Notes: a model not told the origin generated them from the letters alone. A DNA stretch of 64,000 nt from Magallana gigas (GCF_963853765.1 NC_088860.1:17298001-17362000), one strand, 5' to 3'. Positions 3,001 to 50,577 are shown, numbered from the stretch's first letter. Made by a program: numbers and translations.

Positions 3001-6000
3001 AGCAACTTCTCATAAATGAATCATTCTAGGTCATGGGTGCTGGAAATGCTTTTAATTAGGCCACAAAATCACAGCATCATCAATTGGTAAATCACCAAAA
3101 TCAGATCACTTACAGGAAACAGCATGTGTGCTTCATTAGGAGGAGATAAGTATGTGTACTCAACAATTAATGGCCCTGATTCTGTTTCCTTGTTAGAATC
3201 ACTAACCAGACCTCCATACTGCAAACTCTTACTTCCTTTTGTACCCAATACAATCACTAAGACAATAGCTGGTTCTGACATAGAAAGCTATTTTCATTGG
3301 AGATTTTCTAAATAAAGCTGCATTTGTTTTAAATATGGATGTGTACCAGTATGCATTGTATTTATGATGCATCTGTTAATTTCTAAATTAGGCATGACAT
3401 TTGTACAAAGGTCTTTTGAATATAGGACATAACTCAACCCTATTCTAATAAGGGTGAAAATATCTTGTTTTTTGACTTTGCAAACACTGTGTTTGAAAAA
3501 AATCTATTGAACTCGTCTTTAATTCAGCATGATCATCAATCAAACTTGCTTGTTTTTCCAGCAATAGAACAGCCTTTACAATACTTGTAGGGTTGTTATC
3601 TTGTCATTTCATATTTAAGCCGTATTTCAAATGCTTACAAAACCAGGTTTTCTGGTTTTCATAACTTTTCTGGCAAAACTTTAAGAATGCAATTCAGATA
3701 ATCCGCTTATCAATTCCACAAAATCAAATAATTTTTGTTAAAAACAAATTCTTGGTCATATTTCCCAAAAATCTTCATCAAAATACATCAAGTGACTGAC
3801 ATTCAAAAAGAAACTCACCAATACAGACATCAATCTTCCCTTTGATAGCAGCCTCGTGTAGGGGGGTGTAGTTCCAGTTGTCTCGGGCATTGGCGTCCGC
3901 CCCACTCCTCAGTAGAAGCTGCACCACCTCGGCGTGCCCGAAGGAGCAGGCATTGTGTAGGGGGATCAGTCCCCCGTCATCCTTGGCATGGACACTTGCC
4001 CCACACTCCAATAAATGCTCTACCACATCCTTCCTCCCAAAACCTGGAGTCAAATAAAAGTTGTAAACATTAAAACCTTATAAAGACACAGCTTTTAACA
4101 ATGACATGCAAAATTTACAATGGTGAAGAATAATCTATAATACACCAAAAGTCAAATTGAAATTTGTAAATATTTCCCCCAAATTATTAGAACATTTGCA
4201 TTTTAATAAATTCCATTGAAATCATTTAATATCACAAAACTTTTAATTTAATTTAAACAACATTTTATTATGCAATATATCACATAAACGGATAGCAGGC
4301 ATTGCCTATATAAATCCTCTCTGACATAAATTATATAACAAAACTTAATCTTCTTGTCCAGTCTTCATGCTTCCAAATAAAGTTTGAAAATCAGACAGGG
4401 GAAATTTTCTTCTTGACCATTAAAATCAGAACATTGATTAGATCTAATCACAGTGTTCAAAATGTTTTCAAAGAACAATTTAAGGATGGATGGAAGGTTG
4501 GAAAAAAGAGTAGTTTCTTATATAAATTTGGGGAAAAACAGAAAAGAATTACAGCTTTAAGCCTAAACAGGTACAAAAATTGAATTCCTAATCTTCAAAG
4601 CTTTCTGAACACACATAAAATCACAGTGAACATTATATGACACACAAAACCAGTCAAGTAATTGGCTAACTACTGCTGAGATATCCATGTCTGGATCATT
4701 GGAACTGCTGTTATTGACAGCTGTTACATGTTATTACTTATTCATAGGTAAATACCTGGACTTGCAAATTGTGACACTGAAATCCAAATAACATGTATGC
4801 AGCACCTATCAATATTGTTCAATAAAGAACAAAAGCCATTCAACCACAAAATAATATGCAGATATTGCAGATCAATACCAAATACTACAATAAATCTAGA
4901 AATCTTGCTCAGTATATATATTAATTTAATCTTATTTAATGGGGTATGAATTTGAAATGTACTGCCATTACCATTTTGAAGCAAATTAATACAAAAATCA
5001 TCATGAATTAATTTTTCCTTGTTTCATTTTAAAGTCATCATCTAGATGATGTGACCTTGGCCTTGTAAAGTCACCTTAGGTCAGGGTCATCACACATGAC
5101 ACACCCTCAGGCCATGAGAAATGTTATGCTAAACAGGAGTCTACCAAGTGTGTTCTTTTTCAAAAAGCTTACAGACGTCAGGCAACAAAAAAAAGTGAAG
5201 ATATTACTAAATCTCTCTTTCCTCTTGAGTTACTAAAATAAAGGTCATTTTCATTCTTTGTCCATCCTCTCCCCCCCCCCCCCCCCCCCCCAAATGGCTT
5301 GACAGATGGTCAAAACACTGAGGATATTCAACACACAATAATTGATTCTTACTGGAGACATAAGCTTTTCATTTGATGCAGAAAAAATCAAGAAATTAGA
5401 TGAATTTTAAGAGTTAAAAATAAGAAAATTGATACTTTCATTTCCAGGAATGATAATATGTCCATTAGAACATCTGGGTTTCCATATGTAATTTAGGTTT
5501 GGTCAACAAACCTGTCAAAGTTATTTTTTGCTAAGCCAAAGTCATGCACAAGCTGGGACTAAGATATTATTTCAGCTAAATTTGGCGAAATAGGCCACCT
5601 TCGATACATGCATGTCAGATAAATTTTCAGTGAAAATCATAATTTCCGTAGGTCAAACCTACTTCAATTTTACACTGAAGCAGGTTGAAGCCTAGATATT
5701 GCTATAGTGTGTGATGTACCAATTAATTTTCAGGTCAAAGGCTTCAAGAATTTAATTTGGTAAAGTACAAATATCCAAGCATGTTGAATTTCATTAAAAT
5801 TATCAAGAAAGCAATAACTAGCATTCTTACTGAGTGAAGATATAAAAAGACAAAACTGACATTATGTCTAAAAAAAAAGAATGTAAAAGTTGGCATGACA
5901 ACCACTAGAACTTTAAGTAAGAAGATGTGTTATTTTCTTAGAGAGAATAACTGTAATGGAGACACAAATATTGATCTGACGCAATATAATCAAGGACACC

Positions 6001-6431
6001 AAAAGAACACAAACTTATGACGAACCAAATCTCTTTCTTCTTGTCAATTTTGAACATGTTGAAAAATTCTTAAACATCTGATCATTGATCGAAATTTATT
6101 CAAATACAATAGGAAAAATGGATCTGAATGACATCTTAAATCATTCTTCATGCAATATATGAACTTTAATGAATACTAAAACATAAACAAACACAAAATC
6201 AAAACAAAGCTTAATTAATTTGACGTCATCCATACCAGCTGCAAAATGAAGTGGAGATGACTTTCTTCCCGCTGTATCTTTCGCATTGACATTATGGTGG
6301 TTCACCAGTTTCTTTACTTTGTTAAGATCTCCGTTTCTACAAGCTTCAAACAGATCCCTGCCTGGATCATTGGCATGAGAAGGAGACGACGATTCGTTTT
6401 GAAGCAACGATCGTCTAGTCGCCATTTTCAT
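1..6431 (-). CDS. TNKS: Tankyrase (poly-ADP-ribose polymerase, ankyrin-repeat N-terminus), 5' part; gene continues beyond the left edge
   Basis: Exons 6236-6431, 3819-4043, 2110-2205, 902-1014 and <1-48, all with GT-AG boundaries in consistent phase. They join to [48 protein letters not shown]|[52 protein letters not shown]|[33 protein letters not shown]|[37 protein letters not shown]|[16 protein letters not shown], which is the recognisable tankyrase ankyrin region. Confidence 0.96.
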
Positions 6432-6654
6432 TCATCTCCTCACGCGAAATATCGGCCAAAAACGAGATTTGAAAATTTGAAGACAAGCGTCGGAAGGATC
6501 CAGATTCGCAAACTCGGGGGTACTTATCAAAAGTCGATACCTACAAACTTGATCCACTGCTGTTTGAGTGTACATAATAGCAGTTTAATCTTTCTCGTAA
6601 GTGTCACTCTTTTTTAACATAGTAAAGATCGGTAAAATTGATTATGTTTCAAAA

Positions 6655-6939
6655 CAGGCACGTAGCATCGATTTTGAAAGTGGGGGGGGGGGGGCAGACT
6701 CATCCAAAAAATCTTGACAAGCAAATAAAAAAAAATCTTCAAAATCCTAATGGGGGGGGGGGGGGGCTGGCGTAGTATATCTATAACTTATAACTTCGAT
6801 TTCTCATACTCCCAAAAAAGTGGGGGGGGGGGGGGGCAACTCCATGATATTTAATTCAATTTTTACTGTGTAAATTTAAGAAAATTATTTGCTGCCAGAA
6901 AAAGTGGGGGGGGGGGGGGTGGCTGATGCTACGTGCCTG
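6655..6939. mobile_element. MITE-like element with 15-bp TIRs and four poly-G tracts, about 220 bp upstream of the TNKS start codon
   Basis: CAGGCACGTAGCATC at 6655-6669 and its exact reverse complement at 6925-6939, flanked by a CAAAA direct repeat. It is absent from the paralogous site near 42010-42020. Confidence 0.75.
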
Positions 6940-49252: not shown

Positions 49253-49327
49253 ATTCTGATCACATTTTGTCTGTCGTCCGTCTGTCTGTCCGTCTGTCTG
49301 TAAACTTTTCACATTTTCAACATCTTC

Positions 49328-49376
<49 letters not shown>

Positions 49377-50363
49377 AGCCTAAGGGGATTCAAAGTTGTG
49401 AAAATTAAGGACCAGACCCTTTTGCAAAGGGAGATAATTAGGAATTTATGAAAATTTTCAAGAAATTTTCAAAAATCTTCTCACGAACCATAAGACCTAG
49501 TAAGCTGTAACTTGTGTGAAAGCATTCTCAGGTAGTGTAGATGCAAAGTTGTGAAAATCATGACCCCTGAGGGTAGGGTGGGGCCACAATGGGGTGTCGA
49601 AGTTTAACATAGGAATATATAGAGTAAATCTTTAAAAATCTTCTTCTCAGAAATTAAACAACCAGAAAAGCTGAAACTTGTGTGAAAGCATCCTCAGGTA
49701 GTATTAATTCAAAATTGTGAAAATCATGACCCCCGGGGGTAGGGTGGGGCCGCAATGGCGGGGGGGGGGGGTCAAATTTTAACAAAGGAATATATAGAGT
49801 AAATCTTTGAAAATATTCTTCTCAGAAACTAATCAGCCAGCAAAGCTGAAACTTGTAATTTGAAGCATCCTCAGGTAGTGTTAATTCAAAGTTGTGAAAA
49901 TCATAACCCCCAGGGGTAGGGTGGGGCCACAATGGGGGGGGGGGGGTCAAAGTTTAACAAAGGCATATATAGAGTAAATCTTTAAAAATCTTCTTCTCAG
50001 AAACTAATCAGCCAGATGATTCTTTATAATTGTTAAGACTTTGGCCCCAGAACAATTCTTTGGCCTCACAAGAAGGTTCAGAGTTTGATGTAGGATTATA
50101 TCCCATATATAAACTATTGTTAAGGATCTTTTGGAGAACTGCAATACTCAACATGTGATATGACTATAAAATCATCCTGTTAGAAAAGGGACTAATGATT
50201 ATAAACATAAGGATATCCAGGGGGGAAAATGGACTTTATTTATACAGAATCTACATGTATTATTGTACATTGTCCAGATAGTTTGTATTGTGACTCCATT
50301 AAGCTGATTTTATCATACCTATTGTTCCTCAGGTGAGCAATGTGGCCCATGTGCCTCTTGTTT
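49217..50363. mobile_element. Helentron-associated non-autonomous element (HINE) with Cg170-like 166-177-bp repeats
   Basis: TTTTTAGCTCACCTGAGCTGAAAGCTCAAGTGAGCT start, (GTCT/GTCC) microsatellite, unit marker GTGAAAATCA at 49551, 49717 and 49894, and end CTCAGGTGAGCAATGTGGCCCATGTGCCTCTTGTTT. Confidence 0.85.
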
Positions 50364-50577
50364 CATATTGATTTGATTTTTTCACAACCGAAACATTCAA
50401 AGTACGCTTTACTAAAACACCTGCCGCTGTTTCGTATAAAACTATTTATTTTTTTAATAAGGCTTTTACGTGACTGTTTATGCATATTTGTATCGATTTA
50501 ATTTTGTTTTAAATAAAAAATATTCCCAAACTTCTTTAATCGTAACAATATGGCGATAAACCCGCAACTGTTGACTT

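Follow-up and report, generated by a model that had tools for sequence, protein, structure and literature searches.

A Pacific oyster locus very probably built by an old tandem triplication of tankyrase exon 1, its promoter and a dihydrodiol dehydrogenase gene

The locus described here lies in a 64,000-nucleotide stretch of the genome of the Pacific oyster, Magallana gigas (NC_088860.1, positions 17298001 to 17362000), which is referred to below as the window and in whose coordinates all positions are given. It carries the 5′ part of a tankyrase gene on the minus strand, three copies of a dihydrodiol dehydrogenase gene (DHDH) on the plus strand and an enolase-family gene. Self-BLAST of the window showed that these sequences fall into three collinear units starting at 5938, 19615 and 40363, with BLAST identities of 74-87% between units. 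Sequence homologous to 5938-6654 begins anew at 19615 and 40363; in unit 3 an insertion of about 950 bp (40507-41456) interrupts it. Each unit contains a copy of tankyrase intron 1 sequence, tankyrase exon 1, its promoter, a common repeat block and a DHDH gene with seven coding exons. The locus is very probably a real and old tandem triplication of a segment made up of tankyrase exon 1, the promoter and DHDH. A first-pass annotation had proposed such a triplication from the sequence, with restarts of homology at about 19620 and 40365; self-BLAST recovered both restarts, and an exon 1 copy is present in every unit. The units are as follows.

5938-19614: unit 1, from the breakpoint within tankyrase intron 1 to the junction of units 1 and 2 (self-BLAST)
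19615-40362: unit 2 (self-BLAST; the Magallana angulata alignment is unbroken over both junctions)
40363-50459: unit 3, ending where homology to the tail of unit 1 is lost, 5′ of the enolase gene (self-BLAST)

The aligned blocks that bear the genes are 9476-14176 and 17918-18859 in unit 1, 31839-37213 in unit 2 and 45335-48839 in unit 3. In the tails, 18671-18859 of unit 1 corresponds to 48654-48839 of unit 3, 18917-18959 to 48977-49019, and 18979-19067 to 50377-50459, with about 1.36 kb of private, partly tandem-repeated unit 3 sequence between the matches at 49019 and 50377. The homology to unit 1 ends with the match at 50377-50459, just before the enolase gene, in agreement with the shared flank that had been placed near 50435.

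The coding exons of DHDH were mapped in each unit with the scallop DHDH protein, found via exon 4, as a guide; all seven are bounded by GT-AG introns.

9571-18304, plus strand: DHDH copy 1 (exons 9571-9660, 9814-9925, 10363-10526, 10851-11109, 11299-11423, 13355-13505 and 18204-18304)
31940-36914, plus strand: DHDH copy 2 (exons 31940-32029, 32183-32294, 32703-32866, 33187-33439, 33634-33758, 34755-34905 and 36814-36914)
45423-48291, plus strand: DHDH copy 3 (exons 45423-45512, 45664-45775, 46070-46233, 46565-46817, 46990-47114, 47521-47671 and 48191-48291)

Copies 2 and 3 are intact and encode 331 amino acids each. The product of copy 2 is 100% identical to M. gigas XP_065926455.1, and that of copy 3 is 100% identical to residues 49-379 of M. 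gigas XP_011421042.3. Copy 1 has 333 codons, with a two-codon insertion in exon 4, and is open save for one premature TAG at 10488-10490 in exon 3, where copies 2 and 3 have CAG. No M. gigas protein matching copy 1 was found in the protein collection. The copy 1 orthologue of M. angulata (P0194, XP_052704838) is intact and 95.5% identical; it shares the two-residue insertion and has CAG (Gln) at the site of the TAG. The seven-exon DHDH gene per unit of the first-pass annotation is thus correct for the coding exons, but transcripts give nine exons and the frame of copy 1 is interrupted.

The exon 3 pieces of all three copies scored 37-44 bits against GFO_IDH_MocA (PF01408; cut-off 24), and the cluster representatives P0196 and P0281, which are 94-97% identical to copies 2 and 3 and whose clusters also contain proteins identical to these copies, match PF01408, PF22725 and PF02894. 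The top PDB match of exon 4 is the monkey dimeric DHDH 2o48 (E = 2.9e-8), and the nearest named proteins are all called trans-1,2-dihydrobenzene-1,2-diol dehydrogenase. Copies 2 and 3 presumably encode NADP-dependent dihydrodiol/D-xylose dehydrogenases, an activity assigned from family membership. A genome search with a DHDH protein query matched the three loci of the array and nothing else. Matches to PF01408 on two other contigs (C2 and C3) were considered as further DHDH copies and rejected: the DHDH query did not match them, and they are different members of the family.

The second gene represented in each unit is tankyrase. The features of its exon 1 region are listed here.

6234-6431, minus strand: functional tankyrase exon 1 (ATG at 6431, donor at 6234; open reading frame, spliced RNA contig and Ank matches in Pfam)
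3819-4044, 2103-2206 and 902-1023, minus strand: further tankyrase exons, covered by transcript contig L017
6440-6596, plus strand: non-coding 5′ exon of DHDH copy 1 (donor GTAAGT at 6597; exon start unmapped)
19770-20330, minus strand: decayed tankyrase exon 1 and promoter of unit 2, with an in-frame stop and a frameshift
41456-42016, minus strand: decayed tankyrase exon 1 and promoter of unit 3, more decayed than the unit 2 copy

An RNA contig splices the donor at 6234 to tankyrase exon 2, and splicing of exon 1 to exon 2 was seen from unit 1 only. Exons 1 and 2 both give Ank matches in Pfam, tankyrase-1 (5jhq) ranks third in the PDB search after a designed repeat protein and an ankyrin-1/2 chain, and the orthologous tankyrase products, of 1162-1174 amino acids, carry Ank repeats. 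The SAM and PARP catalytic domains fall beyond the window. Tankyrase exon 1 is functional in unit 1 only and is broken in units 2 and 3. In the unit 2 relic the donor of the DHDH 5′ exon has also been destroyed. In unit 3 the first 145 bp of the head (40363-40507) are set apart by the insertion from the relic that begins at 41456, and this relic bears, on the plus strand, the RefSeq 5′ exon of DHDH copy 3 (41822-41959), which is homologous to about 6482-6596 of unit 1.

The 5′ exon of copy 1 is found no more than about 165 bp from the tankyrase start codon. This proximity indicates that the two genes probably share a bidirectional promoter, and with such spacing any duplicate that kept the DHDH promoter would have had to carry tankyrase exon 1 with it. 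A transcript contig bears on the same point. L017 (Logan contig SRR27190600_18847, 5905 bp) runs without a break over 6234-6596 and continues by a splice into DHDH exon 1; it carries the full tankyrase open reading frame and a DHDH reading frame on the opposite strand, 190 bp apart, so that the divergent 5′ ends overlap. After the junction it reads GAACATAATGG, which is of the copy 1/2 type, and it turns to copy 3 letters after a 35-base stretch common to all copies, implying that the contig is an assembly chimera. Even so, use of the unit 1 5′ exon is shown by the junction k-mers of this contig.

The junctions between units share a sequence of their own.

19092-19604: dispersed repeat of about 0.5 kb, exactly at the junction of units 1 and 2

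Its counterpart at the junction of units 2 and 3 is 39879-40346 (about 79% identity), and further copies occur across the genome. Since both junctions carry the same repeat, it can be inferred that the second duplication copied an existing junction, for example by unequal crossing-over. When a copy was sought at the outer borders of the array, to the left of 5938 and to the right of 50459, none was found. A first duplication by non-allelic homologous recombination between flanking copies of this repeat is accordingly unsupported. Both junctions are aligned contiguously by the M. angulata assembly, over 13122-20401 and 37987-40508, and a fused gene model in another M. gigas annotation runs from copy 2 through the tankyrase relic into copy 3.

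The units also contain repeats, some common to all three and some private.

7943-8819 (unit 1), 23679-24128 (unit 2) and 43389-44268 (unit 3): common block, an old interspersed repeat
21060-23691, minus strand: fragment of a non-long-terminal-repeat retrotransposon (long interspersed nuclear element, LINE), private to unit 2, with RVT_1 matches
14600-17900, minus strand: retroelement-like insertion, about 3.3 kb long, within copy 1 intron 6, missing from units 2 and 3

The common block had been read as a decayed zinc-finger relic. Its open reading frames gave no zinc-finger match in Pfam, and no recurring C-x2-4-C...H-x3-5-H pattern or TGEKP linker was found in any of the six frames of the three block copies. 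At least seven further copies of it, 75-77% identical, occur elsewhere in the genome. These two null searches, together with the dispersed copies, leave a zinc-finger relic unsupported; the block is an old interspersed repeat that lay in the unit before duplication.

The reverse-transcriptase reading frames of the LINE are 388, 293 and 217 amino acids long, and the element is present in M. angulata too. The insertion in intron 6 of copy 1 is likewise traversed by an unbroken M. angulata alignment; it contains reading frames of 110-166 amino acids on the minus strand and one of 127 on the plus strand, for which a Pfam search gave no match. One of them includes HIPGKRNVIA, which is reminiscent of retroelement RNase H regions. 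The LINE, this insertion and the one of about 950 bp in unit 3 agree with the private transposon insertions claimed by the first-pass annotation.

Transcripts showed that the DHDH mRNA has nine exons, seven of them coding, with a non-coding 5′ exon and a separate 3′-untranslated region (3′-UTR) exon in addition. The 5′ exons of copies 2 and 3 lie in different surroundings.

24787-24947, plus strand: non-coding 5′ exon of copy 2 (donor GTGAGT at 24948), in a spacer private to unit 2
43725-43754, plus strand: 3′ end of an alternative 5′ exon of copy 3 (donor GTAAGG at 43755; transcript contig L011), within the interspersed-repeat block

The same copy 2 mRNA, with its 3′-UTR exon at 37077-37440, occurs in five RNA assemblies from different runs (L012-L016). 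The window has 48 extra bases (24892-24939) in the 5′ exon of copy 2 that are missing from all five transcript contigs. A repeat of some 165 bp (24600-24765), of which the genome has hundreds of copies, ends about 20 bp upstream of this exon and may be the source of the copy 2 promoter. Copy 3 uses either the 5′ exon ending at 43754 or the RefSeq exon in the tankyrase relic, and its 3′-UTR exon is 48522-48790. All three copies retain a GTAAG donor 24-26 bases past the stop codon (18305-18330, 36915-36938 and 48292-48315), and in copies 2 and 3 this is the donor of the 3′-UTR intron.

In a total-RNA library, exons and introns of copy 1 between 9646 and 12000 are covered at low depth and there is no coverage over 7676-9054, which suggests that copy 1 is weakly transcribed. 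The sole spliced RNA contig on copy 1 exons 1-3 was examined as a sign of copy 1 expression and set aside as cross-mapping, because it bears the diagnostic letters of copy 3. The RefSeq isoform X1 of copy 2 starts with MVNRIFSDWEW, whose coding sequence (18298-18330) overlaps the copy 1 stop codon; at least one model therefore joins copy 1 to copy 2, implying a read-through transcript. In two DNA runs the contig depth at 6494-6887 and 9055-9645 is about 9,000-13,000, compared with 13-40 nearby. These are two high-copy repeats, one just 3′ of the unit 1 DHDH 5′ exon and the other just 5′ of coding exon 1, and many RNA reads end there. The contig depths over 6100-12000 were uninformative on copy number.

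Divergence between the units was calculated as substitutions per site (K) from gap-free alignments. The non-coding sequences gave K = 0.11-0.29, confirming the many substitutions noted before. In the non-coding gene body, copies 1 and 2 are separated by K = 0.11-0.13 and copy 3 from the others by K = 0.19-0.29. In the head region and repeat block, copy 1 is at least as close to copy 3 (K = 0.11-0.19) as to copy 2 (0.15-0.25). The exons are closer than the introns (K = 0.06-0.09; synonymous divergence, dS, 0.09-0.13). In exon 3, 16 informative sites group copies 1 and 3 and none groups copies 1 and 2, whereas the flanking introns strongly group copies 1 and 2. Because the relationships are mosaic along the gene and the exons are closer than the introns, the units must have exchanged sequence after their origin.

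At this locus M. gigas and M. angulata share about 97.5% identity in orthologous DNA. An interspecies divergence of about 2.5%, set against K = 0.11-0.29 between units, implies that the units are several times older than the split of these two species; the age of the triplication is several million years. The protein tree places all the copies within a Magallana clade to which Crassostrea virginica does not belong (support 100/99). Copies 1 and 2 form a sister pair (94/95), and every copy has an M. angulata orthologue as its partner.

In the M. angulata assembly (GCA_025612915.2; DHDH models XP_052704838-845) minus-strand tankyrase is followed by copy 1, then by a hybrid gene and copies 2 and 3, and lastly by the enolase gene on the plus strand. 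The arrangement of unit 1 is the same as in the window, at 97% identity. The enolase neighbour encodes 616 amino acids with Enolase_N and Enolase_C. The array thus keeps the same order between tankyrase and enolase in both species and differs by the fourth gene.

L008:9729-23085, equivalent to about 34696162-34709518 of CM046779.1: M. angulata hybrid DHDH

The hybrid matches copy 2 in exons 1-5 and copy 1 from intron 5 on. Compared with the M. angulata copy 1, the 3′ part shows about 99% identity. Against the M. angulata copy 2 the hybrid gave 95.1% over a match that extends past the crossover; for the 5′ part alone about 99% is estimated. The hybrid is either the product expected of unequal crossing-over, that is, copy-number variation, or a false duplication in the assembly.

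In Saccostrea echinata tankyrase on the minus strand is followed by two tandem DHDH genes. In Ostrea edulis a partial and a full DHDH precede a gene for 616 amino acids, the same length as the M. angulata enolase gene. No tankyrase relic was detectable between the two Saccostrea DHDH copies or in the fetched Ostrea locus. The partial Ostrea gene (exons 1, 2 and 7 only; L020:10001-13834, OX387712.1) lies about 18 kb upstream of the full copy, and the annotation merges the two into one 37-kb model. The scallop has a single DHDH at the fetched locus. The head-to-head pair of tankyrase and DHDH occurs in scallop, Saccostrea and M. angulata, and DHDH is followed by a 616-amino-acid gene in Ostrea and M. 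angulata, in line with the ancestral order of tankyrase, DHDH and ENO4 that the first-pass annotation had deduced. Its statement that DHDH is usually single-copy in vertebrates is weakened by teleost records named 'dihydrodiol dehydrogenase, tandem duplicate 1', and several oysters are multi-copy. On these comparisons DHDH duplication is recurrent at this locus, and the present array is common to at least two Magallana species. The novelty of the array is thereby partly removed.

The encoded proteins were compared with 203 full-length homologues for residue conservation, with the numbering checked against 2o48. The overall ratio of non-synonymous to synonymous divergence (dN/dS) between copies is about 0.6. 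Inside three variable patches the corresponding ratio of proportions (pN/pS) is about 1-1.9, compared with 0.28-0.40 outside, although the patches were picked after seeing the data and the contrast is biased for that reason. Residues Lys97 (the EKP lysine), His79, Asp176 and Tyr180 are taken here to be catalytic, as in the monkey enzyme. Lys97, His79 and Tyr180 are kept in all three copies. Copy 2 carries D176E, at a position that is Asp in 188 of the 203 homologues (93%) and in copies 1 and 3, and G171R, where Gly is conserved in 97%. In copy 3 the changes are G178A (Gly in 99% of homologues) and F129N (Phe in 96%). The divergence is centred on the active-site motif GGGxLxDxGxY, of which the disabled copy 1 has the most canonical version of the three.

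Beyond the array, and in the spacer before its end, the following features were recorded.

48840-48969: assembly gap, the sole run of N, in the spacer that separates DHDH copy 3 from enolase
50683-59199, plus strand: single-copy enolase-family gene (ENO4-like) 3′ of the array, with Enolase_N and Enolase_C matches

From the copy 3 stop codon (48291) to the gap there are 549 bp, which include the 3′-UTR exon, and from the gap to the first enolase coding exon about 1.7 kb; the gap lies in no coding sequence and is crossed by no reading frame. Because unit 1 aligns on both sides of the gap, the order of the sequence is consistent with continuity. For the enolase gene, Enolase_C scored 26.5 bits (cut-off 21.5) and Enolase_N matched weakly at 20.2 bits. 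Tandem or inverted repeat arrays with periods of about 97-180 bp occur at 13665-14416, 38580-39074, 42236-43366, 49463-50016, 59824-60613 and 60721-61025; one of these falls in intron 6 of copies 1 and 2, and another sits in the stretch from the gap to the enolase gene. An open reading frame on the plus strand at 63203-63529 has a protein-kinase glycine-loop motif and is probably the first coding exon of the gene after enolase; it gave no Pfam match at E <= 0.01.

Several explanations of the locus were weighed. An assembly artefact, in which a single-copy locus was falsely duplicated or its haplotypes were left uncollapsed and so appear as three units, is hardly credible. High heterozygosity and a tendency to retained haplotigs are features of oyster genomes, a gap lies inside unit 3, and the extra segment of about 20 kb in M. 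angulata, about 99% identical to its neighbours, could be such an artefact there. However, 11-29% divergence in non-coding DNA, together with kilobase-sized private insertions, puts the differences between the units of the window far above allelic divergence. Each copy has its own M. angulata orthologue, an independent assembly spans both junctions contiguously, spliced transcripts are specific to copies, and the tankyrase exon 1 copies are disabled by different changes. Taken together, these observations dispose of the uncollapsed haplotypes that the first-pass annotation had named as the alternative. The array might instead be ancient and general to oysters or bivalves, its copies resembling one another only through concerted evolution. 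Gene conversion has evidently been active, as the exons (dS 0.09-0.13) are much closer than the introns (K up to 0.29) and trees of different segments conflict, and in Saccostrea and Ostrea, too, the locus contains more than a single DHDH. This explanation is nonetheless improbable, because a tankyrase relic is undetectable between the Saccostrea copies and in the fetched Ostrea locus, the Saccostrea copies cluster together in the tree, the fetched scallop locus has one copy, and the Magallana introns and spacers are still 74-87% identical, which would be unexpected after the older split from C. virginica or Saccostrea. An old triplication in the Magallana lineage is therefore preferred. It is supported by assemblies, alignments and transcripts. 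The following points weigh against parts of it. The evidence for copy 1 transcription consists of low-depth, intron-containing RNA contigs and one contig that is a chimera of copies 1 and 3. That other individuals also have the premature TAG is only weakly suggested, at contig level: no alternative letter at 10488, its first base, is among the variants listed for two DNA runs of other studies. The tree of the units varies by segment, so that the order of duplication is not simply readable. Lastly, a literature search found no activity measurement on any oyster DHDH.

A separate matter is whether the expansion was adaptive, with positive selection for new substrates such as xenobiotic dihydrodiols or dietary pentoses in a filter feeder. 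Two intact copies are transcribed from different 5′ exons, amino-acid changes cluster at or before the catalytic motif at positions that are 93-99% conserved in the homologues, pN/pS reaches about 1-1.9 in the variable patches compared with 0.3-0.4 elsewhere, and duplication recurs at the locus in other oysters. Against this, the patches were chosen post hoc, relaxed constraint would account just as well for an overall dN/dS of about 0.6, and one copy is already disabled. The adaptive reading is drawn from sequence, and the literature search gave no paper on DHDH duplication in oysters or bivalves and none linking oyster DHDH to exposure. We consider it unlikely. A stronger version, in which the locus would be young and variable in copy number, with paralogues driven apart by selection through distinct promoters or 5′ exons, one of these newly taken up next to a transposon, and through substitutions in the catalytic loop, is more doubtful still. 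If it were true, oysters would have DHDH isoenzymes with differing substrate ranges and regulation.

On the preferred reading of an old triplication, the following history may be proposed. The ancestral locus would have had tankyrase on the minus strand head-to-head with a single DHDH on the plus strand, followed by an enolase-4-like gene. We infer that the breakpoints of the first duplication lay in tankyrase intron 1 (5938) and 5′ of the enolase gene (about 19067/50459). The third unit would have arisen in a second event, most simply by unequal crossing-over between the two copies, in which the junction was copied. Afterwards the extra copies of tankyrase exon 1 would have decayed, transposons would have entered the units privately, and the units would have traded sequence by gene conversion or unequal crossing-over. 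The 5′ ends presumably parted in the same period, copy 1 keeping the ancestral exon, copy 2 gaining the new exon 24787-24947, and copy 3 using either an exon in the tankyrase relic or one in the old repeat. At present, copies 2 and 3 are intact and transcribed, and copy 1 carries one nonsense codon in M. gigas and is intact in M. angulata.

The locus offers a compact example of how a duplicate can haul the first exon of a neighbour along with it owing to a shared, probably bidirectional promoter. It also illustrates the aftermath, with decay of the passenger exon, new 5′ exons, homogenisation of exons by gene conversion, loss of one copy by a nonsense change and a recombinant copy in a sister species. 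For oyster biology it supplies paralogue-specific coordinates and diagnostic sites for a candidate family of phase-I/II-type detoxification enzymes, which eases comparisons. RefSeq gives the same proteins for copy 2 (XP_065926455.1 and XP_065926454.1) and copy 3 (XP_011421042.3) and has no model for copy 1. Copies 2 and 3 are thus already annotated as genes, and the duplicated tankyrase exon and the unit structure are absent from database records.

The event is a lineage-specific expansion of a well-known kind, of modest interest, and no new kind of system. The oyster proteins resemble monkey DHDH (Gfo/Idh/MocA family; 2o48, 2poq and 3ohs) in giving it as the best structure match, in the GFO_IDH_MocA domain, in their length of 331-333 residues and in the conserved EKP lysine, His79 and Tyr180; the annotated scallop DHDH is about 52% identical to the oyster copies. 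Compared with the monkey DHDH, the oyster has three tandem copies instead of one, with Glu176 and Arg171 in copy 2, Ala178 in copy 3 and a nonsense codon in copy 1. Tandem DHDH duplicates are also recorded in teleosts, as an independent event compared here by record name only. Among bivalves, tandem expansions of gene families are described for C1qDC (PMC6835236) and the IAPs (PMC7831173). The present array is like those expansions in local tandem duplication followed by divergence of sequence and regulation; it is unlike them in comprising only three genes, in being metabolic rather than immune, and in a duplicated unit that includes part of a neighbouring gene.

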